Shown here in pieces: positions 4,124-40,200 of a DNA stretch of 58,439 nt; the stretch's first letter is position 1; the number at the start of each line of letters is the position of its first letter. Position numbers and translations under genes: made by a program. The notes below the pieces were generated by a model. That model was not told the origin of the DNA. It searched no databases and saw nothing but the letters and a program-made list of their open reading frames with translations. The stretch spans positions 1 to 58,439 of the forward strand of contig CBFFRP010000349.1 of assembly GCA_965644295.1 (NCBI GenBank), read 5' to 3'. The stretch comes from Paraphysomonas bandaiensis (Eukaryota; Protista; Chrysophyceae).

Positions 4124-5331
4124 TTAATGGACTTCTTCCCCGTCTCCCGAGTGTCTAAGCGTATTCAGCAATGATCTCGCAGCCATGCGCGGAGATAATG
4201 CACCGCGTTGCACGTTGACCTTTGCCTCTTCGGCTTCTGTAGACAAGCGTGGATTACTCTGCACCTCATTTTCTACCAATCTCCTAAAATGAGCCCCCAC
4301 CCAGTGCATCGCCTGTCGCCCACGTTTGGCATCTAAGTGACCGCTCCGCGTCATCGTGTCATGGAACTCACTAGCAGTATTCATAAAGTCTTCCAGTCCC
4401 TGTCGTGTTTTCACAGAAACTAATTGCACTCGAGGCGCCCACAAGTGATCCTTGGGACGTAACATACTCATGGTGCCTGCATAATCCGCCTTCGTATGCT
4501 TTGCCACGTTCAAAAGCTCTCCATCCGCTTTGCTCACAACTAGCAGGTCAGCTGCCTCCATAACCCCTTTCTTCGACGCCTGAAGGTCGTCCCCACCTCC
4601 TGGACTCACCAGCAGCACAAACATGTCCACGGCCTGGTCCAGTTCAACTTCTGACTGGCCGAGACCAACGCTTTCCACTATGATGAGGTCGTACCCAGCA
4701 TGCTCACAGAGAGATATCACGTCCACTGTGTGTTCCGCAATGCCACCGAGGACACCTCGTGTGGGACAAGCACGCACATAGGCATCTGGAGACTTCGAGA
4801 GCATATCCATGCGTGTCTTATCGCCTAATACCGATCCTCCGCTTCGGTGGGAGGAGGGGTCCACCTAATCATGAATTAATAAGCCTTACACTATATATTA
4901 TAATATTGTAAACTTACAGGAATGACGGCCACTCGGTGCCCTTCTTTAACGTACATCAATCCGATTGATTCAATAAGAGTGGACTTTCCACCTCCAGGAG
5001 GGCCAGCTATTCCCAATCTAAGAGTTCTTCCATTTTGAAATCCCTTATGATTAGCTTTCTTTTCTGCAAGATAACTAAGAAATAAATCGGATTGAACTTG
5101 ATGATCCGGTCGACTTGATTCTATTACTACTTGAAACGTTACAGCTTATAAACATACGAAATTCAGGCACATACATGTAATGGCCCTGGACAGAGATGCT
5201 CTATCGCCCCGAAGGAGACCATCTGCCAGTGCAATATTATTATCTGACAATCGCTCGCCTGCTCTTGTAGTGGAAGTGATAAATCGGCTCAATTGCCTCC
5301 AAGTAGACCCTCGTATCAATCGTGGGATCAT
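4124..5331 (-). CDS. MMAA: Mitochondrial methylmalonyl-CoA mutase chaperone GTPase (MMAA/MeaB/ArgK family), 3 exons
   Basis: Arg-rich presequence; GDRASLSRAIT; Walker A GIAGPPGGGKST (~4978-5013); DPSS..SGGSVLGDKTRM; VESVGLGQSE; GDDLQASKKGVMEAAD. Confidence 0.93.
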
Positions 5332-5780
5332 AATGCATAGACCAACTAGAATATTTGAGCTCTATTTACTCCTTAATAGTGAATTCTAGCTCGATCAAGA
5401 TAACATGCAAAGGTATGGTCATATAGGGCAAATATATGTGGAGAATGGAGGACCATATACCGCATATACAGCATATGTATTTCGAAACTATTTCAACGGA
5501 TTACATGTAGCCCGTCAATTAAGTTCTATTCTTTTTTTTGTGTATGGAAGTTTGAAGTTGATGATTGAAGTGCAATATGTGTGAGTATCTACTGCAACTT
5601 CAGTGTATAGGGAGTTTGTATATGAACAGTACGTACAGGGAAGTGTGACATGTATGATTGTTCGGTGAGGTGTCAGTAGAAGATGCAGCATGATCATCTA
5701 TAGCACAGCGCATATACATATATGTACTATCGGCTCATAGCATAACTATACATACTATTACCAACCCAATCAAATCAAAC

Positions 5781-8700
5781 ATGAGTTTTATAACGAAACC
5801 AATTGAACATCTCGCTCAATGGGCATCTAGTTCATCTAAGAAGAGAGTGTATGAGTTCCATGAAGGCAGTGAAGAGGATAGAGATCTATTGGGAATAAAG
5901 GGATCAAACTTATGTGTGATGTCCAGGTCACTTGTTTCATACCATAGATATCATGCCACTCTTATTGTATGATGTGATAGGTTAGGGCTACCTGTACCTG
6001 ATGGATTTATTATCACGACAGAGACATGTTTGGATTACTTTACTCTCAATCACACTGAATCCGATATCGATTACTTCGTTGAGGATAAGCAGATGCCTGA
6101 TGGACTAGAACGAAGCTATTTATCTGCACTTCATGCCTTGGAGAAATCAACTAAACGACAGTTTGGTTCTGTTGGATCGAAAGGAAAACTTCCTCTGCTG
6201 TTGGCTGTTCGTGCTAGCGCAGCTGTTCCAATGCCAGGGTAATGGAATATGTATTAATCTAAGAGTATTCTTCATGATTGTACTAGGTTGATGGATACCG
6301 TACTAAACTTAGGTATGAATGACAGCGTCGCAGATCTTATTGCGGAGCAGACAGGGAGCAAGCGATTTGCCTTAGATCTTCATAGGAAGTTCTTGAATAT
6401 GTTCGGACATGTGGTACTCAAAGTAGATCAGCGAGAGTATGAACGACGCACCACTGTGGCAATGGAAGAGGAGAGTGTAGATGAAGTATCCAGACTTTCC
6501 TTAAATGGTTTGGAACGTCTGGTGAAAGAGTTCAAAACCCTCGGCCCTGTGCCCTCTGACCCCCATGTTCAACTAAAGATGACTATTGAGGCTATGTTTT
6601 GCGGCTGGCACTCAGAAAGGTAAGTCGTATATCATTGGTTATATTTTGAGGTAATGCAGTATATCAGGGCTAGAAAACACCGAATTCGCCTTCTTATACC
6701 CGACCAAATTGGTGTGGCTGTTATCGTACAGGTGGGTACTTCCGTCTTGTGGTGTGAGTTGATCGCTGGTTAGTCGACTGCTGATAGCTTTGCTTTGCAT
6801 ACAGGCGATGGTGTATGGTAATAGAAACCGTCGATCTTGTTCTGGGGTAGCTTGTAGCCGTCACCCCGAGACCGGAGAAAACCACCCATTCGGTATTCTG
6901 CTTCAGCGTGGTGGTCTGTGTTGACGTTATCTTGTAGGCGAATTTGTTATGTGCGTCGAGGGTGATGACTTGATTCACGGTGCCCACACCACCCATCCAC
7001 TACAAGAGCTACATATTCGAGATTCCCATGCACTTGAGAATCTCTCCTTGCATTTGAGGACCCTTGAAAACACTGGACGCGAAGCCCAGGAAGTTGAGTT
7101 CACAGTAGATGATGGGGATTTATTTCTACTTGAGGTGAAAGAACTATAATTATGATGTTTTCTTAGCCTTGATTATTTTGGGTGCAGAGCAAGCCACTGA
7201 ACCCTTCCCCCCAAGCCAGTGTGCGCATTGCCGTAGATATGGTTAGATCTAAACTTTTATCGGTGAGTATAGCCTTACAACATGCGCATCGATACCAGCC
7301 ACTGAGGTGTCTATAGGAGAGAGAGGCTATACTACGAGTTGATCCTCTCAATATGACATATTTTCTCTCCCCCACTATAGACCGCGTTCACGGTTGGTAT
7401 TCATGGTCTTTCACTGTTGCTTATGCATTCGATGTGTTGTTCTACTGAAGCGTACACATTGTTTTACTAATATTAGTATTGTCGTGGCATTAATCATCTC
7501 TGACGCACTGTTACCGCAGTGCACAAAGTAATAGGGACTGCGTTGAAGGGATCGGCTGGTGCTGTGTCGGGCCGCGCCGTATTCTCAGGTGATGAGGCGA
7601 GGGATTGCGCGGCTGCTGGAGTCCCGTGCATATTGGTATGTCGTACTATTTAGCCTTACGGATCTCTTCCTCTTAAATATATACCTTGCAGATATTAGAG
7701 GATCCATCAGAGCAGGAACTCGAGGAAGATATATCGTTTGCCAATGGACTCCTTTTCATCCATGGTGGCGTTACATCTCGGGCAGCAGAGGCGGCCAGAG
7801 AGCGATCAATTCCAGCAGTCACAGGTCAGAAAAGTGTGAGAACTAGGACTATGTTAACTCGATAGAATAGGGGCGCATACATGTGGCATGTCTGTCAATG
7901 CCTCCAGAACCCAGCTTATACTACCCGGGGGGCAGAGCATAACCAAAGATGAGGTTTACCTAAATAATGTATTGTCTGTTGTCGCTCTGTTCATCCTTAC
8001 TTCTCAGGAAATTACTATAGATGGATCACACGGAAATATTATTTATGGAGCCGTTCCAACCATTCCATCTGGTAGGAAACTTCCATAATTATTCTCTGCT
8101 AATAATAGTATACCATTCTCAGGTGTTGATAACAACTTCCTTACCTTTATGCGATGGGTGGAGAAGTACAAACGGTAGATTGATATATATCCAATTCGAT
8201 AGATCTACTCAATTTAAGCCGTTATCAGGATGCACGTGTACACCATGGCTAACAATCTGGACGAAGCCACAAAGGTTAGCCTACGCCAGTTCGGTATATG
8301 CTGCATCTTGTCTCAATTTAAGTAGGGTGTAGAGTTGGGAGCGGAGGGTATGGGTGTCTACAAGGTTGAAACTCTCCTGACCGGATCAAAACTCCGTACT
8401 CACTTATTGGGCAGTCTATTGTGCGAGAAGTAAGTGACTGTATACCGCACCATTATACCTCAAACGCTCTAAATTTTCAGAGATAGTCAAAGATGTCATC
8501 TTAACGATATAGAACTTCTTCTTCAGAGAGAATTGGAGACGGTAAGATTGACATCATGCGCCTAACACCGGTGCTAACGACTCTTGCTGCAGGTGTTCCA
8601 CCTGTTTGCGGGGAAAGTAGTTACAATTCGGCTTTTAGATCTGCAAACAAACGATTTCCTACCATCAACAGGTCAGTTGAAGTTGCACTCTATATCTGCC

Positions 8701-10104
8701 TTAAAAATTAACATGATTGTAGCCCAAGAAATTGCTGATCTGGCTGGGAAGTTGGGATTGGTTAGTGTCTATTATGCATGAGTATGGACTGATTTTTCTC
8801 TGTATGAAGCCTGTGGATAAATGTGAGAAAGAAATAATGGGTTTACGCTGTGCCAATCCACTACTTGGTGTGAGGGGATGTCGACTAGCGATACTTCGCC
8901 CGACACTTGTGGAAATGCAAACTCGCGCCATTATGAGTACGTTGGATGGTGTATTGCAGTACATGTCGTTACTCCATATATACAGAGGCAGCTATAGAAT
9001 CGGAGCAGAGGGACCGAGAGAATGTGCGTCTGAAGATCATGATACCGACGGTGTCAACAGATCACGAGGTCTATTCTGAGCCCGTGTGTTTCTGCTTAAC
9101 ATATACCAATTTTTCAGATTGAAGACTTGGCTCCCATCATAAGAAATGCAGCGGAAGAGGTCGTAGCACTGTCTGTATTAGAGTGTCTATTCTTAAAATT
9201 CTATGGTGTTTAGGTGTTTGCAGAAAAAAAGGCATCGGTTCTCTACATTCTTGGATCCGGTCTAGAGGTACCCATCGAGCTGTTTGTTCAATATTTCTTT
9301 GTTTTATTAGGTATTGCTTGTATGAGTAGGTGCCAAGAGCGTGCATGCGTGCTAACGCCATTGCCACTGAGGTAAGACGTCATGCCCGTTTCAGCATTTC
9401 ATCATTCTAACCCTACTGACCAGGGCGATGTTGCATTCCTATCTTTCGATCTCGATCATCTCACCCAGCTGGTCTACGGTTTATCCAGGTATATATGACC
9501 TGTGTCATATAACAGTTGAAGTTTGATGAGTGTTGGAACAGAGATGATTGTGCCAGAGTACTGGAAACATACACTCAAATTGGAATAATGAAGAAGGGTA
9601 CTTAAAACATTGCGTTCAACCTTTTTATTGACACTCTTTGTCAGATCCGTTTGTATCACTTGATGAGAGAGGCGTGGGATCATTGCTCAAACTCGCCAAG
9701 AAACTAATCAGGTATATTTGTCTTTCATGTAGAAGCCTTGCTAAATCTTGGAACGCTATAGACGGTCGAACCGGTTTATGCGCATAGGGGCGTCGGGTAT
9801 AGTTTTGGGTGACCCCAAATCTGTTGACTTCTTAGAGCAGCTTGGATTCGACTATGTGAGTTAGTGGAACATATTTACCCTTACTCTTTTAACGGTCCAT
9901 ATGTCAACTGCTTGTAGATATCATGTTACCCTTTTCTTGTTCCTAGTGCGAAAGTTGCTGCTGCGCAGGCCCACATTAGGGCATCAATGAGTAAGTATAT
10001 GTTGTGTTACAAGTAAACATAACCCTAACCCTTCCGTTTCGTATATATTAGGAGAAAGTGTATGGAACAAAGGAGTTTTTGACAGTCCTACTTTAGACCC
10101 ATAG
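5781..10104 (+). CDS. Pyruvate,phosphate dikinase (PPDK)-like protein, roughly 25 exons, with catalytic residues substituted
   Basis: Collinear PPDK motifs across exons: [121 protein letters not shown]...GFDY, AKVAAAQA. Confidence 0.85.
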
Positions 10105-10508
10105 GAAAATAAGATTAGCTGTTGTGTAGATTGAAATACTACGATGATGGAACCTTTGATCCGATCGCTTCTTTTGGAATGATTACATATGTATACTACA
10201 GCATGGGCATCACTTCGTGGCATAGACAAACCTAGATTCGAAATGGTTGATCCAAAGCTCGTAGCAAACCTGTTGTAATTGGTATGTCGATTTCTTCGAC
10301 TGCGTAACAATGTAACAATTATTTGGCACTTAATCAGGGAAGTATGTGTTATCAACCTTAATTTCAATTATTACCACTCAGGTCGATTATTACAGTTGTG
10401 AATAATTACAACATACGAAATACCTAACACTTCTTAATGATACCTACTCATCTGTCACATCAGGATTTGGGCCAGTAGTAGAGATTTTAATAAGGATGTA
10501 AAAGTGAA

Positions 10509-10656: not shown

Positions 10657-12088
10657 GTCGCGTATCATATATAGTTTGTTGGTAATTATTTAGTCTATGT
10701 GATATTTTATTCATGGATTCACGTATATTCCTTAACGCGTGTCTTAATACTCTCCGTCAATGAAATAATCATATGACGTATACATAGAACATAGATATAT
10801 GAAGTTTGGAGATAGTTCTACTGAGGGTTAAACCCTCTAGTACAATCACAGATTGTGGATTACACTGATCTCAACATACAACATACTCGTGGAAAACTCC
10901 ATAGATCTCTAAGTCATCCATCGTGGTCTCTTGTTTGAGTTCTCTGCCGGTGGGATATAGATAATAGATACTCTTGTTCTTTTATTGCTAGCAGGTATGT
11001 TGATGCCTCCTCCCCCCATTAGTGAATCCCGCAATCTGTGGAACGTGTTTGATATGAGAGGTTTAGTTAGAGTGTCGGCCAGCATCTCGTTTGTAGGCAT
11101 GTAATCAACAATAATAGAGTGCGAGGCGACTTGTTCTCTTATGAAGTGATATCTGATGGCAATAGCTTCTTGACATGCTGTTAAATAGTGTCATGTAGTC
11201 CGCTTCTGTAGAGAAGGATAGAGCAACAGTGGTCTGGAGTCGTGATTTGCCAGGAAATGAGACAATTTCCAATAAAGAAGCAAAACGCTGTGGTCGACCT
11301 GCGAGTTAAGTTGCAGCGTGTATTGGGTCATTTAATTCGATGACCCGCCCTTCATTTTCTCGTGGGGCCAATCCTCTGTAAGCAGCCACGTGGCCTCTGA
11401 TGACTGTGATTCTTGTCGTGATGTATTGAAGGCCATCATGTGGATCTGTGTGAGTCATTCCGACGAGGAATTGGAAACTCTCGGCTGTTCGATTCTCTGA
11501 ATTTTCTTCTCTCAATGATGATTCGATTTCAGCGTAATAGTTTTCCTTGACGTCGGCGATGCACTCATAGAAAAAGACGTGACTTGAGATTACGAAGTCC
11601 TTGAGTGAAGGTACATATATGACATACCCTGGTCCATCCTCCCGGTATCCCATGAAGTACCCAATATGGCTGTATGGAGAGCAATCGTTTCTTCTCTGAG
11701 ACTTGTCTATGAATGTATGGCATTTGCAGCCCCAAATCCTGGAGTAGGATAAATCGGGGGCCTCGTCATGGACGAACTGATACGGTGATGTGAATCCCTT
11801 CGCAGTGGCGCACGGCAGACGATTTTTCATATTCGTGACGTTGGTTGGTAGGCCTGAGTTGCAAATAGATGCAAGCGTTCTTTCCTTGGCCGTGAGCCAT
11901 GGTCACACTTGAATAGGATTGTCTTCAGGCGTATATGGGGCGTTGAAGGTCTAGATTGACCCTAATTTTCTCAGCAAGTTTAGTACACGATGTGACACTA
12001 GCTCACGGCCTCCGTCAGCATGATAGTTTGCCTTTCGAACGCACATAATCCACAATTTTCTGAAGACACTCAATGACAAAATCCTCGT

Positions 12089-15213: not shown

Positions 15214-17077
15214 TCAAGAGCTTCTACTCCTTGAGTGCGACACGATAAGCTTATGTTGGTCATTCGGATCATCAATATTCTCTACACTATAACCATTACA
15301 AGAAGCTATTGCATCCAATGCATTTGCAACCGTTGACATCTGGATATAAACTTGTTATGACGTTCATATGGTTAAATAAGCTGACTAACCTTGAGAAAGG
15401 CATATCCCCTGGATGGTATAATATTGATGATCTCCATATCGTACTCTCCGAATATATCCCAAAGTAGTTCCTCTAGATCTTCTGCGGTGTCTGACTTCGG
15501 TAAACCACCCACAAACAGCGACCTCGCTTGGTCTTCATCAATAGTGCTGCAACACAATAGTAACACCATCAGTAGCAAAAGCGAAAAAGGTAGCAGCATA
15601 CCTGTCCTTAGCTGCGGCAGTAAATCCGATGAAGTCAACGGTTGTCTTGGGGTCTCTTCGTCCCCACCAGACTTTGTGGAAAATTACGGACTCAGGTGTA
15701 CCTTTGTCATCAGCTAGACCTAATTGTAGCGCCAATCGTCTGTGTTCTGACATATCTCGGTCCCGTCTGTGGGCAAAGAAAGTCAAGAACATACCATTCA
15801 CAGATGTATAAAATCCATCGGCACGGATCTGCACCAAGAATACAAAGTTACGTTTGTTTTAGACCTAAAACGGAGTGGGTACCTGAATGACTAGGGTAAA
15901 TGTTCCAGTTGGAAGCACATTGAAAGCAGCAAAAGACCTCCTGTCGATGAGTCCCCATAATCCGCGGCTCATGTCGTTCTGCAAAATCTCTCGGCGGCGG
16001 GACTCATACCGCGGGTTGAAATGGAAGTACACCTCCGACCATTGGCCCGGCAGCAAGTGAGAGCACAGCTCGTTATCATTGTCCCCACTTCCAGTACGAT
16101 TCAACATTTCTTCTGGCCCTATATTAATAGACCAACGTCTAGATGAGGACGGAACAGTTATCTTGAACGCAAGTGTTTGATTTTTAAGTACACTGAAGTC
16201 ATCCAATAAAAATTCCTTCGCTGTCCCACCCGATGAGTGGACCTTCTGTGGATTCCAATCTTCCGTCAGCAAGAGACCCATGGACGGAAACATATCTCCG
16301 TCCAGCTCATCCGTTGCCACTTCCTTGTAACTCTCCTTCTGTGTTATATTATACCGTGCACGCGACGCTACCTTTGTCGGAACTATATTACTACTGGAAT
16401 CAGCATTATTAACAGTCGTATCTTCAGATCTGACAACACGGGAGTCAGCTTTCTTGTTATTTCCGTGTTCTTCCAAACGGCGGCGTTTGATTTTCGAAAT
16501 GTCGTCTTCTGGAGGGGAATCGACTTTACGCTGAATCGAAGTGGCACTAGAATTCTCTGGGGCTGTACTCGCAGGTTCCACTTTTCTCTGCATGGCAACA
16601 TTTATAAGAGCCAAGTGGATCACAAGGAGCAAACCTGAGCCACGTTTGGCGCATCGACAGGTTCCCGCAATCTACTGGACTCCTATATAATATCACACAA
16701 CATAAATACTATACATCCTCGATGCTATATACATATAATGCATACTCCAGCGTACACACATATACCTATACACATACATACACGCATATACACACAGTGC
16801 TATGAGTGGTACCTCTATTACATAATTAACAGACTGTGCGAGATGTTTCTGTTGTCTGATCTGCGCCTGTCTCGCCTCATGTTTCTCTCTGGATCTATTA
16901 TCAAAGAACTCCACCAGCTTAACCTCAGCCTACACACACACCACGTGACTACACACACATACAGACATATATACATATACATATAGAGTATGATAAATAC
17001 ATAAGATAAGTAAGAAGCAGTCGCACACACACCTCAGTCAGCTGCCTTCCATTGTGGTTTGATAGTGATAAACTCAT
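15214..17077 (-). CDS. Multi-exon protein with a galectin-like domain followed by a C-terminal RRM
   Basis: Manual splicing: ATG 17077 MSLSLSNHNGRQLTE / AEVKLVEFFDNRS... / ...FHFNPRY..ILQND..GLWGLIDR..GTFTLVIQ / IRADGFYTSVNG..FAHR / SLFVGGLP (RNP2)...RGYAFLK (RNP1)...; stop TGA at 15216-15214. Confidence 0.72.
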
Positions 17078-17143
17078 AGCTTAAGAGGCAAGATGGGGCA
17101 TCTGCTCTCAACATCTTTACTATAACACCATAACACCCATACA

Positions 17144-18270
17144 CATACATACATACATACATACATACATACATACATACATACATACATACATACATAC
17201 ATACATACATACATACATACATACATACATACATACATACATACATACATACATACATACATACATACATACATACATACATACATACATACATACATAC
17301 ATACATACATACATACATACATACATACATACATACATACATACATACATACATACATACATACATACATACATACATACATACATACATACATACATAC
17401 ATACATACATACATACATACATACATACATACATACATACATACATACATACATACATACATACATACATACATACATACATACATACATACAGATGTAC
17501 ATACATACATACATACATACATACATACATACATACATACATACATACATACATACATACATACATACATACATACATACATACATACATACATACATAC
17601 ATACGTACATACATACATACATACATACATACATACATACATACATACATACATACATACATACATACATACATACATACATACATACATACATACATAC
17701 ATACATACATACATACATACATACATACATACATACAGATGTACATACATACATACATACATACATACATACATACATACATACATACATACATACATAC
17801 ATACATACATACATACATACATACATACATACATACATACATACATACATACATACATACATACATACATACATACATACATACATACATACATACATAC
17901 ATACATACATACATACATACATACATACATACATACATACATACATACATACATACATACATACATACATACAGATGTACATACATACATACATACATAC
18001 ATACATACATACATACATACATACATACAGATGTACATACATACATACATACATACATACATACATACATACATACATACATACATACATACATACATAC
18101 ATACATACATACATACATACATACATACATACATACATACATACATACATACATACATACATACATACATACATACATACATACATACATACATACATAC
18201 ATACATACATACATACATACATACATACATACATACATACATACATACATACATACATACATACATACAT
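17144..18270. repeat. (TACA)n microsatellite, ~1.1 kb
   Basis: Direct reading; variant CAGATGTA interruptions near 17494, 17738, 17974 and 18030. Confidence 0.98.
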
Positions 18271-19313
18271 CTGAGCGATGTCTGACGTAGTGTACTCTGT
18301 ACATATGGTGTACAATGCAGATTGCTGCTTGTGCCTTTCAGATGCAGTAGAACACTTCAATAACGATGATCGTGATGCCTAGGAAGGCTAGGGCAACAAT
18401 GAGTAAAGTTGAATTGGAGCAAGGGAGGGCTCTAATCCCTGAAGTGCGAAGGCAGTTTAGTGCAGATTTATTTTCGGCAGAGTTTCCACTGGGCGTACGT
18501 GTGGATGAATAGGGTTTAGAATTATCATCAGCTCCTGAACCTCTTCCTCTGATGATGACTCTGAACCCTCTTCGTTCAGACCTATGTCCAGCTCTTGAGC
18601 ATTTAGGTGTAGTAACACTACAATACATACATACAAACATGCATACGTACATTATATATCCTTTGGTTTTTGTTTTAAATATATCCGTATGTCTATGGAA
18701 TTGGTCTACTCGTCTACTCTGATACCTGTCGTCTAATGGGAAGTTTTGAGAGGGCTGCTGAGTCATGAGCATGCGTATAGTGGTCTGCTTTGCAGGGTTT
18801 GTCACATGAATCCTTATATGGAATATTGTCGAAGTCAAGTTCTTTGATTTTCAGTCCCAGTATATAGTATATGTATTGGGTCGAAAAAGAGTGGTATTTA
18901 GTATAAGTATAGTGTAGTTAATATCCATGCTTGAGGCCGAATACACTTATTAAATCTAGCACCTCGTGCTCTGAACGCGAGATGTTAAGTGTTAGTAAGT
19001 AACTGCAGCAACCAGCCATAAATAACTATTATTGCGAAGTAAAATTTATAGGGGGTGTACTAAATAGTAGTCTCGCATAAAAGGTAAAATGCAGCACCAA
19101 CTGATAGAATGGGATACTAGATATCATTAGCACTCAATTATTATAGCCGCACTTACATTTCAACTTAGGCAGCAATAAACAACACATTTTGGCAAGTGTA
19201 GCACCACGTAAGCTCATAATTTCAGCCATACAATATGCTCTCACGGCATAGCAGCATTAAATAACTTGCCGACACACACACTACACACCGCGCAATATTC
19301 ATGAAGTGTTAGG

Positions 19314-20786: not shown

Positions 20787-20914
20787 GAGTTAAAACACTT
20801 GGAACAAACTCTGTACTGATCGTAATACTGTTTCCAAAGTGTAGTGGTGCGGATATGAGCTTAACTATGCATGTTTATCCTCCAATTGTATCCCATGACA
20901 CTCCTCCACATATG

Positions 20915-22283
20915 CATACATACATACATACATACATACATACATACATACATACATACATACATACATACATACATACATACATACATACATACATACA
21001 TACATACATACATACATACATACATACATACATACATACATACATACATACATACATACATACATACATACATACATACATACATACATACATACATACA
21101 TACATACATACATACATACATACATACATACATACATACATACATACATACATACATACATACATACATACATACATACACACATACATACATACATACA
21201 TACATACATACATACATACATACATACATACATACATACATACATACATACATACATACATACATACATACATACATACATACATACATACATACATACA
21301 TACATACATACATACATACATACATACATACATACATACATACATACATACATACATACATACATACATACATACATACATACATACATACATACATACA
21401 TACATACATACATACATACATACATACATACATACATACATACATACATACATACATACATACATACATACATACATACATACATACATACATACATACA
21501 TACATACATACATACATACATACATACATACATACATACATACATACATACATACATACATACATACATACATACACACATACATACATACATACATACA
21601 CACATACATACATACATACATACATACATACATACATACATACATACATACATACATACATACATACATACATACATACATACATACATACATACATACA
21701 TACATACATACATACATACATACATACATACATACATACATACATACATACATACATACATACATACATACATACATACATACATACATACATACATACA
21801 TACATACATACATACATACATACATACATACATACATACATACATACATACATACATACATACATACATACATACATACATACATACATACATACATACA
21901 TACATACATACATACATACATACATACATACATACATACATACATACATACATACATACATACATACATACATACATACATACATACATACATACATACA
22001 TACATACATACATACATGCATACATACATACATACATACATACATACATACATACATACATACATACATACATACATACATACATACATACATACATACA
22101 TACATACATACATACATACATACATACATGCATACATACATACATACATACATACATACATACATACATACATACATACATACATACATACATACATACA
22201 TACATACATACATACATACATACATACATACATACATACATACATACATACATACATACATACATACATACATACATACATAC
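20915..22283. repeat. (TACA)n microsatellite, ~1.37 kb
   Basis: Direct reading; only rare CACA or TGCA variant units. Confidence 0.98.
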
Positions 22284-22443
22284 TGCTGTATGTAACAATA
22301 CAGGCTGCTGTATTCTGTACTCCATGAACTCTTGACTGCAGTGCATATGTACATAGTCCGTGATATCTCTGTGCAGATACAACTATCACCATCACAACAT
22401 ATCTCACCCCAGTGACCAACATATTTCCACGGAAGTGTTAGTC

Positions 22444-25228: not shown

Positions 25229-27757
25229 CTATGATATCATATTCAACCCAAAGACCCACTCTCTAAGATAATTTAAAATTTGAATAGTGCATATAGGAAT
25301 GTCCACATGTCTCAATACATCTGTACAAAAACTAGTACATAAAGCAGTCACCTTCTCTTTGTGGTATTCAGAAGTTGATTCATAAAGAAGGTCAGAAAAA
25401 TGGGCATGAACATATTCAGTCACGTAGGCCGTACCTTTAATATACCGCACCGCAACAGAAAAGACATCAGATACATTATTCAGTGGATCAATATTACGTT
25501 GGAGGAGAGGAGGCATGTGACACACCTCCAGCCACTGTACGGTTGGTGCAATGCGGAAATCTGTCAGAGCATCGCTCAATAATCCGAGGTGTCTGAAATC
25601 AGATATATACTTTTTCTCTAGGACTTCATTTCGCGCACGCACAAGACTCGCCTCATCGCCATAAAGGTGTGGAGTACCCGCCGACCGATCTATTTCATTT
25701 ATTTTGTCATGGATCTGTATCATCCTCGCGATACTCTCTGGCCAAGGCGACCATTTATACTTAGCTATAAACGGCCCATCTCTTATGATCATATGACGCA
25801 TCAAACTGGCCTGCTCTAAATCCCTAGCAATAGTATCCGTAAGGGCGTCACCTTCATACAGAAGGTAATGTCTGCCGGACCCATACGATACTTTATCAGG
25901 TAGATTTCTGTGGATAAATCTTGAGTACATCGACAATCCAAACCATTGACGCGGTTGAGATGGGTCAACGGTGTACTGCGAACGCCCACAAACCAATGAG
26001 TGATGAAACTGCAGCGGTGGGTGACCATCGTTGTCTATCATGGTATAGGAAGGAAAGCGCAGTACAGTATAGCCCTCTGCTTCCACTTTATCAGAAGCTA
26101 GGTACCCTCTTAAATCTGGAATCACAAGGAACTCTCCCAGTGTTAACACAATTTTCCAATCATCGGGATACATACGCTCAATGGCCATCAGCTCCTCATC
26201 AGCCTCTTTGCACACAAAAGTAGAGTGCTTAGATTGTACTACTCTCCAGCTGCTCGGTGCTTGCTCGCTGATAATACGTAGAGATGCGTCGGAGCTGTTG
26301 TAGTCTAGGAGTATAGCCATATCGAAATGTGGGGCATGATGCCTAATCCAATGAGGAAGCAGAAATTCTTCGTTATACATATGAGTAAGTAATATAACTC
26401 TTCGGTTTCTATTCAAACTCACAACAGGATGGTTTAGCGTGTTTCGGAGAGCAAAGGGTTGTGCTGGAATTATTCCACGAAGGTCTCTCTGAGCAATGTT
26501 AATGAGCAGCTGCCGTGAATCACAATCTCCACCCTGTCGAGAAATGCAGTCATCTGACCAAAGCACTGCCACCATGCTGCTAACTGTCTGACCAGAAATT
26601 GTGCTTGCTGTTGCTAATATTGCATCTCGCGTACTCTGCTCCTCGATTCGCCTACCGAGAATAACTACCACGAGACCTACAGACGAATTCGGCAACTCAG
26701 ACCAGTCGCTTAACGTAGCAGTGCCCAATATTTTAGCAGCTTGATCATTCCACGCATACGTATGTTGAAAAGAATTGTCTCCCTTTAAACCCTCACGCAG
26801 CGCCTGAAGTTTCCCTAAGGTAGTAGAATAGGTGTCCAGACAAGCCGTGGATACTGCGTACCGCTGATTTACCAAAGAAGTCAACAACCTCTCTGCCCAT
26901 TTCATCTCCTCCATGCTCCTGCGTTCGCCCATATGGTGCACTAAACATAGCCTTGGCGCAGCTCGCACAGCAGAGTCCACCAATTCTTCTATCGATAGAG
27001 ATGACGGAGACAGTACGAGGTCCGAGGGAGTAGGAAGGGGCTCTGATAAATGAGATGCGACATACACAACTGTAGAAGAAGTTGCATAGGCCAGTTCATT
27101 CCACAAGCGCCAACCTGAAACTGCCAATGAGTAAAGACTGTAACTCTTTCTGTATCCTTCTGTACTACTAGTAGATATCGAAGACGTCAAAATATCTAGT
27201 ACAGCTGGGCCCATTGAAGACGCATCCAATAGGTAGTGCATATGACTAGGCAGAGTAGGAATCTGTATTTCTCCAATACTTCTTGAGTTGCATATTGCGT
27301 CACCCAGATATTTAGGCACCATAAAGTTCTGACTATCCCCCAGATAGCCATACATATTTCCTATGTGTACTGTGATAATATTCGACGCAGTGGAGTTGAC
27401 CAACACAGCATACTCCAGTCTACTTAATACATGAATAATAGTTGGTCTTTTTCCAACTAAAGAGTAACCAGAAACACACTCAAAAATATTTGAAGGGACT
27501 AAATCATCACTAGCTATCAACAATACATCATACATAAAATAACTGTCAGATGCGCAGTGCTGTGTTGAGAAAATCGAATCATATGACGCGCGTTCATAAG
27601 TCATATTAACGTCCATGTGAAGAAAATAATGAGCGAGATGATCGCAATATGTACATGTTTCCCATCCAATGAGAAAAATACTTACTGCTTTTGTTCTATA
27701 AGCTGTAGCGGCTATTAGTAGCAACAATACAGCCCAACTCCAACACTGCTTTCTCAT
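25229..27757 (-). CDS. Intronless 842 aa signal-peptide protein with a C-terminal GT2-like (Glyco_tranf_2_4-type) glycosyltransferase domain
   Basis: Hydrophobic N-terminus; LLTHMYNEEFLLPHWIRHHAPHFDMAILLDYNSSDAS; DWKIVLTLGEFL; YGSGRH. Confidence 0.8.
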   Translation of the reverse strand: MRKQCWSWAVLLLLIAATAYRTKAVSIFLIGWETCTYCDHLAHYFLHMDVNMTYERASYDSIFSTQHCASDSYFMYDVLLIASDDLVPSNIFECVSGYSLVGKRPTIIHVLSRLEYAVLVNSTASNIITVHIGNMYGYLGDSQNFMVPKYLGDAICNSRSIGEIQIPTLPSHMHYLLDASSMGPAVLDILTSSISTSSTEGYRKSYSLYSLAVSGWRLWNELAYATSSTVVYVASHLSEPLPTPSDLVLSPSSLSIEELVDSAVRAAPRLCLVHHMGERRSMEEMKWAERLLTSLVNQRYAVSTACLDTYSTTLGKLQALREGLKGDNSFQHTYAWNDQAAKILGTATLSDWSELPNSSVGLVVVILGRRIEEQSTRDAILATASTISGQTVSSMVAVLWSDDCISRQGGDCDSRQLLINIAQRDLRGIIPAQPFALRNTLNHPVVSLNRNRRVILLTHMYNEEFLLPHWIRHHAPHFDMAILLDYNSSDASLRIISEQAPSSWRVVQSKHSTFVCKEADEELMAIERMYPDDWKIVLTLGEFLVIPDLRGYLASDKVEAEGYTVLRFPSYTMIDNDGHPPLQFHHSLVCGRSQYTVDPSQPRQWFGLSMYSRFIHRNLPDKVSYGSGRHYLLYEGDALTDTIARDLEQASLMRHMIIRDGPFIAKYKWSPWPESIARMIQIHDKINEIDRSAGTPHLYGDEASLVRARNEVLEKKYISDFRHLGLLSDALTDFRIAPTVQWLEVCHMPPLLQRNIDPLNNVSDVFSVAVRYIKGTAYVTEYVHAHFSDLLYESTSEYHKEKVTALCTSFCTDVLRHVDIPICTIQILNYLREWVFGLNMIS

Positions 27758-32178: not shown

Positions 32179-33807
32179 TTAAAGAGAGAAGTCCACGCCC
32201 TGAGCCAATGGAACTGATGTTCCGTAGTTGATAGCACATGTTCCACGACGCATGTATTGCTTCCATGAGTCACTGCCGGATTCCCTTCCGGCACCGGTAT
32301 CCTTTTCACCACCAAAAGCTCCGCCAATCTCCGCTCCACTGCACGATGTGTTAACGTTGATGATGCCACACTCGCTTCCAGTGGGTCCCAGCCACCGGAA
32401 AACATTCCTCATGTTAGAGGTGAAAAGCGCAGATGAGAGACCGAAAGGGGTGTTGTTGTTAATCTCTACGGCCTCCTCGTAGCTGCCTACTTTGAGAACG
32501 TGGGTGATGGGGACAAATAGCTCCTCCTTCACGATGGGCATATCGTTATTGCTCTCCACAAGAGTTGGCCAAACATAGTAACCATTCTCGAGGCCCTTGT
32601 CCTTAAGCTCGCTCTTATCAATACGCCCGCCACCGTACAGGACCTTACCGCCCTGTTTCTTAATCTCAGCGATGCCATCCTCATACTCTTTGATAGCCCC
32701 TGTGTTGTGTACTGGACCGAGGAGAGTACCGTCGACAAGAGGATTTCCGGGCTTGATCTTAGAGTAGGCGTCCACCAAAGCGGGCACAAACTTGTCGTAA
32801 ATCTTCTCATGTACAAGTAGGCGGCGAAGAGTTGTGCATCTCTGTCCGGCAGTACCTGCAGCAGCGAAGAGAACACTGCGAAGCGCAACCTCCAAGTCCG
32901 CATCATCCATGACAATCACAGCGTTGTTACCACCAAGCTCCAGGATGGTTCTTCCGAATCTCCCGGCGACAGAAGAGGCAACACCCTTGCCCACAGAGGT
33001 GCTACCAGTAAAGGAGATCAAGTTCAAGCGCTTGTCGTCAATCAGGCGCTGTCCAACAGTAGCGCCACTTCCCTGACACATAGTAGCAATACCTCCAGGA
33101 AGATTGTTATCCAAGAACACCTCAGAAATAAGTTTGCTCTGGGCGATAGTCACCAAAGAAGAGCTAGAGGCACCCTTCCAAATCTGGGTATTTCCACACA
33201 CCAATGACACGGAGGTGTTCCACCCATGCACAGCGCAAGGGAAGTTGTATGCCGAAATGATACCGACCTGACCAAGGGGATTCCATGTCTCGATAAGGGC
33301 GTGGTCTTCTCTTTCGGAGGGAAGCATCTGCCCTGGGAGCTGACGACTCATACCAACAGCTAGGTCGCACATGTCAATGAACTCTTGCACCTCTCCAAGA
33401 CCCTCAGTCTTGATCTTTCCCATTTCCAAAGAAATAAGAGATCCCAAAGACTCCTGGTGATCGCGAAGCTTAAGTCCAATCTGTCTGACAATTTCGCCTC
33501 GGCGGGGAGCAGGGGTCAGCTTCCACATCTCCATAGCTTCAGTCATGTTCTTGAGGCAAGACTCATAGTCATCCGCATTACCAAATCGCACCTTGGCAAT
33601 TGGTTCTCCCGTAGCAGGGTTAATGGAAGTGTGGGTCTGTCCATTCCCTACCCATTCTTTTCCATTCCAGCATCCCAGATTCTCTTCTTTAAGTCCTAAC
33701 TTTTCTAGAAAAGGATACTTGTGGAAGGTTAAATCCGAAGAAAAGGAAGCCCGAAGAACAGAGGCAGCTTTGCCCTGGCGTGCAACATTAGAGAATCTTG
33801 ACAACAT
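32179..33807 (-). CDS. ALDH7: Aldehyde dehydrogenase family 7 (antiquitin / alpha-aminoadipic semialdehyde dehydrogenase), intronless, with a mitochondrial-type presequence
   Basis: PAPRRGEIVRQIG, EGLGEVQEFIDMCD, NPLGQVGIISAYNFP, LELGGNNA, GTAGQRCT, GAEIGGAFGGEK.TG.GRESGSDSWKQY. Confidence 0.96.
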   Translation of the reverse strand: MLSRFSNVARQGKAASVLRASFSSDLTFHKYPFLEKLGLKEENLGCWNGKEWVGNGQTHTSINPATGEPIAKVRFGNADDYESCLKNMTEAMEMWKLTPAPRRGEIVRQIGLKLRDHQESLGSLISLEMGKIKTEGLGEVQEFIDMCDLAVGMSRQLPGQMLPSEREDHALIETWNPLGQVGIISAYNFPCAVHGWNTSVSLVCGNTQIWKGASSSSLVTIAQSKLISEVFLDNNLPGGIATMCQGSGATVGQRLIDDKRLNLISFTGSTSVGKGVASSVAGRFGRTILELGGNNAVIVMDDADLEVALRSVLFAAAGTAGQRCTTLRRLLVHEKIYDKFVPALVDAYSKIKPGNPLVDGTLLGPVHNTGAIKEYEDGIAEIKKQGGKVLYGGGRIDKSELKDKGLENGYYVWPTLVESNNDMPIVKEELFVPITHVLKVGSYEEAVEINNNTPFGLSSALFTSNMRNVFRWLGPTGSECGIINVNTSCSGAEIGGAFGGEKDTGAGRESGSDSWKQYMRRGTCAINYGTSVPLAQGVDFSL

Positions 33808-34286
33808 GTTGTGGCGTAGATATGTGGCGTATAAGGGGTAAATGCACACTATTGTGAAGCTAAATATGACAGAAGCAACATCCTTTTGCTCGCAGCCTCA
33901 CGTATGATATAGTTCATATATACATACATACACACATGCTGCATCACGAGCTGCTGATGATGATGTACGAATAGTTAATAGATTCGGCGAATGCTGTATA
34001 AAAATAAGCATATACTGTACGTATATGCTGTATACAATATGTGTGAGTCCATATCTGCTGCTGGTAATGTCGTATTCCTATTGTAGTATGAGTATGCAGT
34101 GTATAAGAAGCAGCTGTTGGTGAAAGAAGACTGAAGACTGAAGACACACACTTTCACTTCAGACTTCACACCAACTCCATCTAAATTTATGCATATAGCA
34201 TCTCGCACATATAAATATTGCCTCTAGTATACCTCCTATACACCCTGCTTGTAATGTGGTATAGGCTACAATAAACTCTCATTGAT

Positions 34287-37200
34287 ATGGCAGCATTATT
34301 GTTTTATATTTTCTTATTCCTAAGCCAATATGCAACTGTAGAAAGTTCCTGTGAAACATTTAATACAAAATGTAGTGCTACAATAGGAACAACACTGTCT
34401 TCTGGATCCTCTGGAGAAGAAGATTTCCTTCTAGATAAACATGGAACGTTATACTTTGCATTTAATGTAAGTTACGTAGATCGTCTATGATGATATTTAA
34501 TTATTGTGTATATAGCAACCTGAAAATTCTCCAAGTGTAAAGATATTAACGTCTATAAACTATGGAAACATTGAAATATTCGCTGCGATTGGCAAACGTG
34601 TGTCTCCTACTAGCTATGATTTGAAGGCGGATAGACTGCAGGATGTGTGTGTTGTGGTGAGTGATTATTCTCGTGCACTGATATTCAATCACTATTTGTC
34701 ATAGAATGCGAATGGGGATAGTTCAAGTCGCGTGGTGAATATTCTTATACGAGCCACTACTAGTGCGATGTTTCGTGTGATCGCCACGACTTCGTCAACA
34801 CATACTTCGTTGAAACCAGGTGCACCTCAGGTGGATACTATACGGGCCTCGGGACAAAATATGTACAAGTTTACTGCATTGTCTACAGCAAGTATGTACG
34901 TCGTAGTTACCCCTTACGTGTCGGGAGATCCAGATCTGCTAGTTACTGGCCCACGTATTAACGGAAACGCAAGGACTTGGGAGAGTTCCGAGGAGGGTGC
35001 AGACTCCGTGATGATCATTCCTACTGATGCTGAAGTGGGTGGTACTTTCACTGTAACGGTGACAGCTACCAACTCCTCCCTTTACATGATACTCGCCTCA
35101 GAGTCTACCACAACTCACCCTTCCTCGTTGCTCGGTGGATTTCCTCTCGAGGACTACGCTGAGGCGGGTACCAACTTGTACTATACCCTGCAGGTCCCAG
35201 CAGGTATGTATGCTTCACGTGATGTTCCATTAGCTGACTTCTTTTTGTGCATTAACTATAGGTCATGCGGATGTATTAGCCATGGTTACACCTGTATACG
35301 GAGATGCAGATATATTTGTCAATACTGCTGCCAAGGGCTTTTATACACAGAGCGAAGATGGGTCCTCCCAGCCTGCCACTTGGGACTCTCAGCACTCCTT
35401 TGGTACGGACTCTGTCATTATAGACCACACGCACAGTGCGTATCAGGCCGATGGAGGGGAGTATTACATCACTGTGTACGCTAGGAAAGCATGCAGATTT
35501 GTGGTCAGGGGGTTCTCCGCTGCAACTGTTGTCACATTATCTGAAGGTAGAGTGACTGAGTGGATAATTTAATGCATTTAATTGACATCTGCAGGCTCTC
35601 CGATTATTGACACTGTGTCTGCTGGAAGCTACCACTATTATCGTTTTTTGGACAACACCCCATCTCAAGACGTTGTATTCGACGTGAGTCCACTGTCAGG
35701 TGATCCAGATCTGCTTGTTGGTTGCCAAGTGGATCCTACAGGTGATGACTCGGGTTATCCCTCGAAAGCTTATCAGCATCACAACTACTCCTCTGTGAGA
35801 AGTGGGGAGGATGGACTCTTGGTGCGGCAGTCAGACACTCATGCGTGTCGTAATGGCGTATACTACCTAGCGGTGTATGCATTTACAGCCTCGAGGTTCT
35901 CGCTGACTTCAACGCATCAGGGTGGGCTTGTGACTCTTCAGGACGGTGTACCTGTACAAGCACAGGCTTATGCTGGCATTCCCCGATACTTCCGTTTCAC
36001 GATGGGGCCCGAGCCGATGCAACTGACTATTTCTCTCACTCCGAGCACGGGAGATACAGACCTGTTCGTGAAGCTTGGTGGGAGTGTTTCGCAATATACA
36101 TGGGATTACTATTCGGTCAACGGTGGCACCGCTGTAGATCAGGTTATTATTCCCGAAACGGAAGTGTGCACAAATTGTGAGGTCAGCATTCTGGTTACAA
36201 GCATGACGATGACACCATACTCTATTGTGGCGTCGCTGGAAGACACAACAATCCAGCTGGCTGATGCAGTGCCACTCAAGGAGTCCGTAGCATGGAACGC
36301 AATTCAATATTATACTCTACATTCTGCTAGTAACGGTACTGCGAGAGTGGTGCTGACAGTGCTCTCTGGAGCACCGGAGCTGTACATATCTACTAGCGAG
36401 GAAAAGCCGACCCGTACCTCTCCTGATACTGTTGTTAATACCATGGCAGCGATTGGCAATTTGCCTGTATCGCACATACCGGTGAAACCTGGAGAGGTGT
36501 TGTACATTGGAGTTGGGGGAGCAGGCTCCAATGCCTCATATACTGTAAGAGCCAACCTCCGCGAAGCAGGTGAGGTGTTTGGTATGTTGTGACTGCGTCT
36601 GAGGTTAGATAATAATATGTAGGAGTTGAGCCTCTACTTCGACTTCCTGAGGCGATGTCCCAGGCTGACAACTTGGATCGGGACGGTCCCCAGTGGAACT
36701 TCTATCAGATCAATATGCCTGCGGTTATAACTTATACCTTATTGTGTTGCGTGCTGATAGTGTTTGTTGATATAGGGTCATGAGTCTATAACTCTGAGAG
36801 CGACACCTCTTGTGGGAAATGTCGACGTCTACATATTACGTTGTCCGTATCAAACCTCGGAATGTGCTGGCACCCATGGTGATGGGGCCACGTCATACCT
36901 ACCCACCATGTCATCGTATGACGTGACCACCGCTGGACAGGAGAAAGACTTTGTTACCGTTTCTCGTAACGACGACACTGGAGTGTCCTACATAGTAGGT
37001 GTCACGTCTGACAGTCTCTACGCAGAGTACCATATCTCGATGTCTTTAGAAAGCTCTATTCTAGTACTTTCTCCGGGTACTCCAGTGACTGATCATGCGG
37101 AGAAAGGGGAATATGACTACTTTTCGGTATATGCTGAGGATACTCCCCAACAGCTGAGTCTGACTCTCACACCTCTTTCGGGGGATGCTGATATGTACAT

Positions 37201-40200
37201 CGCGACTGATACAAGGCGGCCAAATCGGACCCATTCCACCTGGACGAGCATGCGGTTCGGGGAGGACGTAGTGACGATTGATACGGAGCTGGATGAGAAG
37301 GCTTGCACTGGATGTACATACTATGTAGCTGTGTACGGATACGAGGCGAGTACCTACAGTCTTATGGCAAGTACACAGTCAACCGTGGGGCGCCTATTGG
37401 ATGGAGTTCCTATCAGCGCTCACGTTGACATGTTTGGCTATGTTCGATATACCTTCCGCAATACCTATGGCATTGCTCGGAACTTCCGGGTTGTTCTAAC
37501 CGTTCTGAGTGGATCTCCTTCACTATACATCACTCTTGATGGAAGAGTTCCCAGCTTCACGGAATATGACTATCATTCTAACGCTTGGATGACAAGCTCT
37601 GTTACAATACAACTCGCACATACAGATGAGAGATATGCACCATGTGTGGACGCGGACTGTGACATTCGCATTGCTGTTTACGGTCTTGTGTCGAGTTCCT
37701 ATACGCTCTCCATCACATCCTCAAAGTCCAGTACACTGCTTCAAATGGGTGTACCGGTGCAAGCCGAGGTGGCTGAGCTACAGGTAGATTACTTTAAGGT
37801 TCTGATGTCCGACACCACCGCAACTCTCAAGGTGTCACTAAATGAATACTCTGGGGTTGCTGTTATGTACTTGTCCTGCCACCATGAGTTCCCTAACTCC
37901 ACAGCATTCGACTGGTACTTATACCCAGCAAATAGGAATAGTGGAAATTACATCGAAGTTTCCAGATTGGAATCTATTGATAAGAGTTGCCCTTCCACTG
38001 GAGAGTTTTATGCATCAGTGAAAGGCTTGACCTCTTCTACCTACAGTATAATGGCCTCCATCACGGGAAATGTTACGGCTCAGCGACTGATACCCGGAAC
38101 TGTGGTTAATGATGCCGTAGGATTTCACGAATTCGATTACTTCTTTTACCGCCCGCAAAATGCAAATGACAAATCCAACAACCTGGAGATTACGTTGACC
38201 GCCCTTCAGGGAGATGTGGATGTGTACGTAAGTCCTAGTTGGGAGAGGCGGCCGTTTTACTCTCCGAGCACCGACGAAGTAATGTCCTTCGCACTTCGTA
38301 GTGCGGAGATTGGTAATGATAATCTCTTAATTCGCCGAAGTGATATGCGCGATATGTGTGGGAACCACGACCCTGACTGCTACATTATCATTGGAGTATA
38401 TGGATCATATGACGGAGGCGGAGTAGGGTCTACTTATCGCTTAGAGCTGACTCTGCAGGACACCACACGAACTCTGAGTAGTGGTGTGGCAGTGCGCAGT
38501 CATCTTGACCAACACGAAATTGACTACTACAAGTACACAGTGACAGCTCCAGATAAAGACGTGGTAATTGTGGTTACGCCGTTTTCTGGTGACCCTGATA
38601 TGTTTGTGTCACTGGCTCCTAATCGTCACCCATCTTATGCGAACTACACCTGGATGACGGTGAGTGAAAGTGTGTCTTTTTTGTTAAATCTTATTTTATA
38701 TTGGTGCGTGTAGGCCTTCTGGGGAGCAGATACATTGACGATTCAGCATTCCGACCTGTCCGAGTACTGTGTTCCTGTACCGAGTGAAGGCAAAAACTGC
38801 GAGTTATTTATCGCTATCTATGGGTGGCAAAACTGTTCCTACTCCATTGTTGCACAGATGGATGAGGGGGCTTTACACCCCGTTGCTCTAGTGGATGGAC
38901 AGCCTCAGAGTGGCCATGTAGCACTTGGTTCTTATGCGTACTACACCTTCTTCATAAATGATCACGATCACTCACTACTCCCAGCTGGCTTAACTATTAC
39001 TCTTACCTCTACAGATGGTGGAGACCAGGATATCTATCTACTGTTTTCGGACGAGGAGGAGCCAGGGAAGAATCACTTTGATTATGCTTCCACAAACTTT
39101 GCTGGGGTTAGTGATGAAGTGCGGGTGTCAGCGGGAGATGCCCACTATTGTATCAATTGTATGGTACATATCGCTGTTTTTGGGTTTAAGCCGGGGCACT
39201 ATTCTATCGTGGCTACCTCACGCAATGTGCAAGAATTGCAATCTGGGGTGGCAGTTGGGGGACACCTCGAGCAAGGCCAGTACCGCTACTACTCCGTACG
39301 AAACACGAACCCTACTGCCCAAATCTCTGTTTCACTGACTCCAGTTAATGGCGATCCCGATATATACATGAATATTTACTCGGCGAGCAGTGATGGGACT
39401 CCCTATGCATTTCCTACTACTTCCCGCTATACATGGCGTTCTATACACGCTGGAAATGACGAGGTGTCTTTCAACTACGCCGACGAGAACTTTTGCGTAG
39501 ATTGCACTTACGTAGTGGGCATATACTCGTATCGCAACTCCTCGTATACCCTTCTTCTTACGAACACAGATGATGCTGTTGTCAGTTTAGTCAGCAACCG
39601 ACCCCAGCTAGTGCATGTTCGCGATGTGTCAAAGTTGCGGTACTTCCGAGTGGAGTCTGGGTCATCTTCTGAGGACGTGACTGTGTCTGTAACAAACTTA
39701 GGGTCTGCACACTTAGTTATGTACATGCAAAAGTACCCCCTCGCATCCTACAATGGCTCTCTCCCGTCTCCCACCGATCCATCTAGCTACTCTTACACAA
39801 CTCTACACTCTGGCATGGACCACATATATGCGCCTGGCCCCAACAATGCGCCACAAATATACGTAGTCGGTGTGCATGCTGATGTGGCGACTAGCTTCAG
39901 CATAGTCGTATCCTCATCAGCCCGACCAGTTCTTTTGCAGTCTGGAGTGCCACAGAGCCACTATGTCAAGCAAGGAGCGATGGAACAGTTTACTTATTAT
40001 ATGGATCCAGATGTAGATATTCAGGTGTGTCGATAGATATACGACTTTCTCAGCTAACAAGTGCTGCAGGTGTCAATATCAGCGGTATCCGGTGATCCGG
40101 ACATATTTTTGTCAACCGCTCTGCCTCCACCAGTTTGTTATTCAAGCGCCGCATACTGGTGAGTTGATATAGTGTTCTTTAGCCGTGTCATGGCCTAAGC

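Follow-up and report, generated by a model that had tools for sequence, protein, structure and literature searches.

A candidate pseudoenzyme derived from pyruvate phosphate dikinase in the chrysophyte Paraphysomonas bandaiensis

Pyruvate phosphate dikinase (PPDK; EC 2.7.9.1) is the textbook swivelling-domain enzyme, an oligomer in which Cys831 acts as proton donor (residues are numbered throughout after the Clostridium symbiosum protein). In the C. symbiosum enzyme (structures 1kbl/1dik and 2fm4), we take the essential residues to be His455, Cys831, Arg561, Arg617, Asn768, Asp769, Lys22, Arg92, Glu323, Gln335 and Arg337. To our knowledge, all characterised members of the PPDK-type ATP-grasp subfamily (PPDK, phosphoenolpyruvate (PEP) synthase, glucan-water dikinase and rifampin phosphotransferase) use a swivelling His. 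Here we describe a PPDK-like gene from the chrysophyte Paraphysomonas bandaiensis, located on a 58,439-nucleotide stretch of genomic DNA (GenBank assembly GCA_965644295.1, contig CBFFRP010000349.1; hereafter the window). Its product resembles C. symbiosum PPDK in domain order and length, as it does its closest full-length relative, a protein of the chrysophyte Epipyxis sp. (P0007) with the full set of canonical motifs and 41% identity with our model. A full-text literature search returned no description of a PPDK pseudoenzyme, an absence that is not proof.

The window protein shares with canonical PPDKs the N-terminal start motif KKRVYxFxEG as well as Lys22, Arg92, Glu323, Thr453, Arg617 (in IRLLD) and Glu745 (in LEVPRAC), and Asp620 is also retained. 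It differs from them in lacking both His455, replaced by Arg, and the Cys831-Gly-Glu-His signature, which reads Ser-Gly-Ile-Val (GASGIVLGDP versus the canonical GVCGEHxGDP), and in the replacement of Asn768, Asp769, Arg561, Gln335 and Arg337. Only Arg617 and Glu745 are kept among the five residues of the PEP/pyruvate and Mg2+ site. In the ATP-grasp site, Lys22, Arg92 and Glu323 (the latter in an upstream EVEF) are unchanged, and the replacements of Asp321 by Glu, Gln335 by Glu and Arg337 by Lys are conservative.

These assignments derive from alignments with canonical PPDKs, two of them anchored on solved structures. Specifically, Arg faces His455 when the exon carrying the His loop is matched with the central domain of the C. 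symbiosum enzyme (2fm4), and exon 6 aligns to residues 270/271-333/334 of 1kbl/1dik, which settles how Asp321, Glu323 and Gln335 are numbered. Exon 27 taken alone gave no PPDK match in the PDB, so that the C-terminal motifs were assigned from comparison with canonical PPDKs by MAFFT and tblastn. A preliminary description of the gene, made from the letters of the DNA, had reported the altered motifs GGVTSR, GASGIVLGDP, SFDLDHLTQ, LESK and GVYKVE and the retention of Thr453, Lys22 and Arg92; the alignments and structural anchors confirmed the changes, the alignments confirmed the retained residues, and every coordinate given there, including those of the CGG (7779-7781) and TCG (9793-9795) codons, was borne out. 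Without His455, transfer of a phosphoryl group between the two active sites would be impossible by the known mechanism. Judged on these residues, the window protein lacks catalytic features that define PPDK and should not be classified as a PPDK enzyme.

The window gene is expressed and correctly spliced. Four public RNA runs (three labelled as different organisms and one poly-A marine metatranscriptome) supplied contigs that, over positions 5500-10400, contain 28 joints, each with GT..AG at its borders. Placement of 15 of the 28 was listed outright and that of 3 was inferred from the boundaries of contig pieces; the remaining 10 were placed by enumeration of GT-AG pairs, constrained by the exonic lengths that the contigs fix and by the open frame. 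The resulting coding sequence of 2769 nt specifies 922 amino acids with no internal stop, interrupted by introns of 45-127 nt with an ordinary GTAAGT / YAG consensus. Canonical splicing, noted earlier and proposed for verification by RNA-seq, is thereby supported by transcripts from the four runs, and the freedom from disabling stops noted earlier for part of the exons holds for the whole model. The only listed difference between RNA and DNA is a synonymous A-to-C change at position 5880 (AGA to CGA), with none at the critical catalytic-site codons. Because the RNA contigs agree with the DNA at these codons, neither sequencing error nor RNA editing accounts for the changes, to the extent that contigs can tell, in keeping with the earlier argument that a single sequencing error was unlikely to have turned the His codon into CGG. 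The predicted protein has no N-terminal extension and looks cytosolic. Introner-type intron gain was ruled out, the 28 introns being no more alike than shuffled controls, as was a ciliate-type genetic code, given that no in-frame TAA or TAG occurs across the 922 codons.

Exon-wise Pfam searches recovered the PPDK_N, PEP-utilizers mobile and PEP-utilizers_C domains in canonical order, as the preliminary description had read them, and the same three-domain layout emerged from tblastn and MAFFT comparison with the canonical P0007 over amino acids 2-901.

Exon 3, searched against 1.8 billion representative proteins, yielded 2318 relatives; one exon-sized match (P0001) pointed to L025, a metagenome contig of 28 kb. 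The orthologous gene on this contig (9496-13100), modelled with 10 introns, encodes 922 amino acids and shares the N-terminus of the window gene product. The two proteins are 53% identical, the N-terminal domain being the best conserved part (59%, versus 45% for the central and 51% for the C-terminal domain), and 7 of the 10 L025 introns occupy the same codon and phase as introns of the window gene. The proportion of synonymous differences (pS) is saturated at 0.81, while that of non-synonymous differences (pN) is 0.315. An orthologue of the same length, common introns and a restrained pN against a saturated pS together indicate that the gene is not a decaying duplicate, and the comparison shows long-term purifying selection on it. 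As to intron numbers, the 28 introns of the window gene and the 10 of its orthologue, with 7 in common, correspond to 21 lineage-specific gains or losses.

The L025 protein has Pro at the position of His455 (GGVTSP) and has also lost Arg561 and Asn768/Asp769, and it keeps GVCGEHSGDP, so that loss at the C-terminal site has gone further in the window copy. In a more distant orthologue, L026, the His position is occupied by Leu in an otherwise unrecognisable loop, the Thr is lost and the Cys motif reads IGAS. The specific His-to-Arg and Cys-to-Ser changes, which the preliminary description had proposed to look for in orthologues, are thus not shared. Since His is absent from the window gene, L025 and L026 alike, it would have been lost before these lineages split. 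The conserved feature is the absence of His455, not any particular replacement; the other catalytic residues have been drifting separately in each lineage, with length, fold motifs and introns maintained.

Searching the genome with P0007 revealed at least 11 PPDK-like loci, four full length and seven comprising the ATP-grasp domain only (Table 1); this protein query performed better than whole-genome Pfam searches, which missed the window gene itself with its short exons. Comparison of all 11 loci with canonical and His-less queries showed that the four full-length ones lack His455 and Cys831. Where canonical PPDKs have the His, the window protein, L025 and L026 carry Arg, Pro and Leu, respectively, and the remaining full-length paralogues carry Ala or Val; no alternative phospho-carrier is conserved. 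The seven ATP-grasp-only loci are 35-48% identical to the N-domain of the window protein and share its Lys22 and Arg92; they differ from it in that the central and C-terminal domains are wholly absent. Lys22 and Arg92 are kept in 11 of 11 loci and Glu323 in all eight in which it could be aligned (five of the seven ATP-grasp-only loci included). Gln335 has become Glu or Asp wherever aligned, again including five ATP-grasp-only loci (the Glu of the window gene was taken from spliced alignments), and Arg337 varies (K, I, V, S, R).

At least two of these paralogues have counterparts in MMETSP transcriptomes: P0151 (817 aa) is the spliced product of C162, and P0158 (375 aa, MMETSP1103) is the product of C132, with 97% identity over 117 aa. 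MMETSP1103 carries TAXON_ID 36769, the genus Paraphysomonas, and the nearest PPDKs come from chrysophytes, both in line with a colourless marine chrysophyte of Paraphysomonas type as the source of the genome. Fragments from other organisms match single paralogues best (P0011 with C151, 67%; P0013 with C132, 60%), from which it follows that the duplications are older than the splits between those species. A maximum-likelihood tree groups the window protein with L025 and the C162 product (SH-aLRT 99), and this clade is nested among chrysophyte PPDKs (100) that include sequences of Epipyxis, Mallomonas and Ochromonas. The view that the fold has been retained and the chemistry selectively lost, as opposed to ordinary decay, is upheld by expression, by the same-length orthologue and by old paralogues that share the loss.

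The exon-wise search turned up no canonical PPDK at the 11 loci, the central and C-terminal parts of P0007 matching only the four full-length ones, and an exon-wise search of the genome for the PPDK regulatory protein (PDRP; PF03618) returned no match, an absence that is not proven. Thus, neither of the two partners that the preliminary description had proposed to look for was recovered, and of the features of PDRP-regulated PPDKs, Thr453 is present and a PF03618 gene was not found.

Other PPDK homologues also lack the catalytic His. Like the window protein, a homologue of Ochromonas sp. CCMP1393 (P0154/P0022, MMETSP0005) has its catalytic His replaced, in this case by Tyr, and Gln335 replaced by Glu. 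It differs in keeping the whole C-terminal PEP/pyruvate site (Arg561, Arg617, Asn768, Asp769 and CGEH) and in having Asp for Thr453. The tree does not settle its placement relative to the window clade, and the loss of His may be common or independent. Other full-length homologues without the His are P0030/P0157 (Logan), with Gly, and P0131 (NCBI/ENA/Logan), with Phe; Pfam finds the full PPDK architecture in P0022 (which falls in the same 90% cluster as P0154), P0030 and P0131. In P0070 and P0142, His is kept and Cys is absent.

We consider it probable that the window gene encodes a selected, PPDK-inactive protein. The three-domain PPDK fold would have been kept in a protein that no longer runs the PPDK reaction, given that it lacks the His, the proton-donating Cys and some of the Mg/PEP site, and the gene would be a member of an old expansion branching within the chrysophyte PPDK clade. 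That nucleotide binding is the selected property is possible and the reading that we favour, although we hold this part with some doubt: the N-domain may bind ATP, AMP or pyrophosphate (PPi) and serve as a sensor, regulator or scaffold, with no phosphotransfer to pyruvate. Such a role is suggested by the family-wide presence of Lys22 and Arg92, and of Glu323 where aligned, by the greater constraint on the N-domain than on the other domains, by the seven stand-alone N-domain genes and by the drift of the phospho-carrier loop and C-terminal site between orthologues. Among the roles raised in the preliminary description, a putative nucleotide sensor is the best. A broader scenario, which we regard as speculative and rather unlikely in its entirety, is that the window gene belongs to an undescribed, old and expanded PPDK-derived chrysophyte family, made up of full-length His-less proteins and stand-alone ATP-grasp proteins, with a new nucleotide-dependent function (as a sensor or as an ATP-grasp enzyme acting in trans) that would have persisted in a heterotrophic Paraphysomonas-like species after loss of the canonical enzyme.

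The main rival is a neofunctionalised enzyme, in which a catalytic ATP-grasp domain would pass phosphate or pyrophosphate to, or ligate, an acceptor other than the in-cis His, such as a small molecule or a partner protein, with the rest of the protein serving as a substrate-binding scaffold. The invariance of Lys22 and Arg92 and, wherever it aligned, the constancy of Glu323 speak for this model, the Glu that replaces Gln335 across the family could still ligate Mg, and the stand-alone paralogues suggest that the domain works alone. We nevertheless think it unlikely, as the catalytically important Arg337 varies among paralogues, no candidate acceptor was identified and the characterised subfamily members known to us all depend on the swivelling His. 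Much less probable still is a regulator of a genuine PPDK, either as a dominant-negative subunit of a heterodimer or as a decoy for the PDRP kinase/phosphatase through Thr453. PPDKs are indeed oligomeric, the window gene, its orthologue L025 and all three remaining full-length paralogues retain Thr453 and the GG(V/I)TS loop, and the Ochromonas homologue without His has Asp in place of this Thr; however, with no canonical PPDK detected at any of the 11 loci or in the rest of the genome, and no PDRP domain either, both the dominant-negative partner and the kinase decoy of the preliminary description are disfavoured, and L026 has dispensed with the Thr and the whole loop. The least credible alternative, bordering on the negligible, is a young pseudogene or an error in the sequence or the gene model. 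The joint loss of many catalytic residues, and the more advanced erosion of the C-terminal site in the window copy than in its orthologue, are what a decaying duplicate might look like, but such a copy would hardly hold 922 codons without a stop across 28 correctly spliced introns, be transcribed in four runs including the poly-A metatranscriptome with identical key codons, and have an orthologue of equal length with common introns and a pN far below the saturated pS.

Several points weigh against a selected, PPDK-inactive nucleotide binder. The loss of activity is inferred from residues that are essential in the C. symbiosum enzyme. The three conservative replacements leave an ATP site that is not fully canonical, so that nucleotide binding is only putative. 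The genome was searched exon by exon in an assembly of unknown completeness, so that a canonical PPDK or PDRP may have escaped detection. Finally, the earlier proposal of a dN/dS below 1 stands in so far as pN is far below the saturated pS in the comparison with L025, but dS saturation yields no numerical omega, and no close orthologue was found: a scan of metagenome contigs with exon 3 retrieved only PPDKs at no more than 45% identity, mostly bacterial-looking and none a closer orthologue, and these loci do not enter the present analysis.

With these reservations, the window gene appears to be a well-supported pseudo-PPDK: expressed, spliced, conserved beyond synonymous saturation and part of a family whose full-length members all lack the His, in a genome where no canonical enzyme was detected. 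It reveals an order of decay after the loss of catalysis, with the His going first, the PEP site and Cys motif following later in each lineage, and the nucleotide-binding Lys, Arg and Glu staying fixed. This raises the question of what a PPDK ATP-grasp domain does when there is no His to phosphorylate. In practical terms, protist 'PPDK' annotations in genomes and metatranscriptomes that are used for C4-like or PPi-dependent metabolism may include inactive homologues.

Table 1 Features of the PPDK-like gene (positions in the window) and the PPDK-like loci of the genome
Feature	Position	Strand	Evidence or remark
Transcribed span (5' UTR, CDS, 3' UTR)	5685..10328	+	RNA contig pieces
CDS of PPDK-like protein	5781..10104	+	29 exons, 28 GT-AG introns, 922 aa, stop TAG 10102-10104
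Introns 1-7	5927-5980, 6239-6286, 6620-6667, 6732-6804, 6893-6937, 7135-7187, 7263-7316	+	
Introns 8-14	7393-7519, 7636-7691, 7825-7870, 7954-8007, 8072-8122, 8175-8228, 8275-8325	+	
Introns 15-21	8430-8480, 8542-8592, 8672-8722, 8761-8809, 8937-8985, 9069-9117, 9160-9213	+	
Introns 22-28	9268-9329, 9372-9423, 9489-9541, 9598-9644, 9712-9761, 9856-9917, 9991-10051	+	
N-terminal nucleotide-binding domain (ATP-grasp, PPDK_N), exons 1-8, about aa 1-412	5781..7392	+	Pfam PF01326; exon 6 match to PDB 1kbl/1dik
Central swivelling domain (PEP-utilizers mobile), exons 9-13	7520..8174	+	Pfam PF00391 on exon-10 ORF; PDB 2fm4
C-terminal PEP/pyruvate-binding TIM barrel (PEP-utilizers_C), exons 14-29	8229..10104	+	Pfam PF02896 on exon ORFs; tblastn with canonical P0007
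Lys40, equivalent to Lys22 (GIKGSN), retained	5898..5900	+	
Arg126, equivalent to Arg92 (AVRAS), retained	6210..6212	+	
LESK for LQTR, split after LE by intron 6 (7135-7187): Gln335 to Glu, Thr336 to Ser, Arg337 to Lys	7132-7134 + 7188-7193	+	Alignments; numbering against 1kbl/1dik
Thr453 (ACA), retained	7773-7775	+	Alignments
CGG, Arg at phospho-carrier His455 (GGVTSR)	7779..7781	+	Alignments with canonical PPDKs, 2fm4
YKVE for CRTE: Arg561 to Lys	8359..8370	+	Alignments
FDLDH for FG(T/S)ND: Asn768 to Asp, Asp769 to His	9445..9459	+	Alignments
GASGIVLGD for GxCGEHxGD; TCG 9793-9795 is Ser at Cys831, then Glu-His to Ile-Val	9787..9813	+	MAFFT, tblastn
Full-length locus C349 (window)			His loop GGVTSR; Cys motif GASG
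Full-length locus C149			His loop GGVTSA; Cys motif GVFG
Full-length locus C231			His loop GGVTSV; Cys motif GVFG
Full-length locus C162			His loop GGITSA; Cys motif GVSG
ATP-grasp-only loci C204, C19, C238, C352, C132, C77, C151			L003, L004, L008/L018, L020, L021, L023, L024; about 330-390 aa

Directly upstream of the PPDK-like gene and on the opposite strand lies a gene for a MeaB/ArgK-like P-loop GTPase (GPPGGGKST; 4124-5016, minus strand). Neighbouring genes of the window have long unbroken open reading frames (for example, 25229-27757 and 32179-33849), the latter an intronless frame on the minus strand for an aldehyde dehydrogenase of 556 aa. A very long gene on the plus strand (34732-42348) consists of repeats of roughly 100 aa that each carry GDPD(L/M/I)(Y/F/L)V, followed at the end by a transmembrane segment and a tail rich in Ser and Gly; it probably encodes a large surface protein. 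Repetitive elements comprise a copia-like fragment (10909-11830, minus strand) and two near-identical tandem Ty3/gypsy-like retrotransposon copies (47392-51341 and 53113-56674, minus strand), in which gag-like, reverse transcriptase and integrase regions and a chromodomain-like tail were recognised by eye and of which the second appears frameshifted. In addition, two arrays of a short AT/GT-rich repeat, of 1.3-1.5 kb each (17034-18360 and 20855-22422), read as MYVC/HTYI repeats in all frames of both strands.

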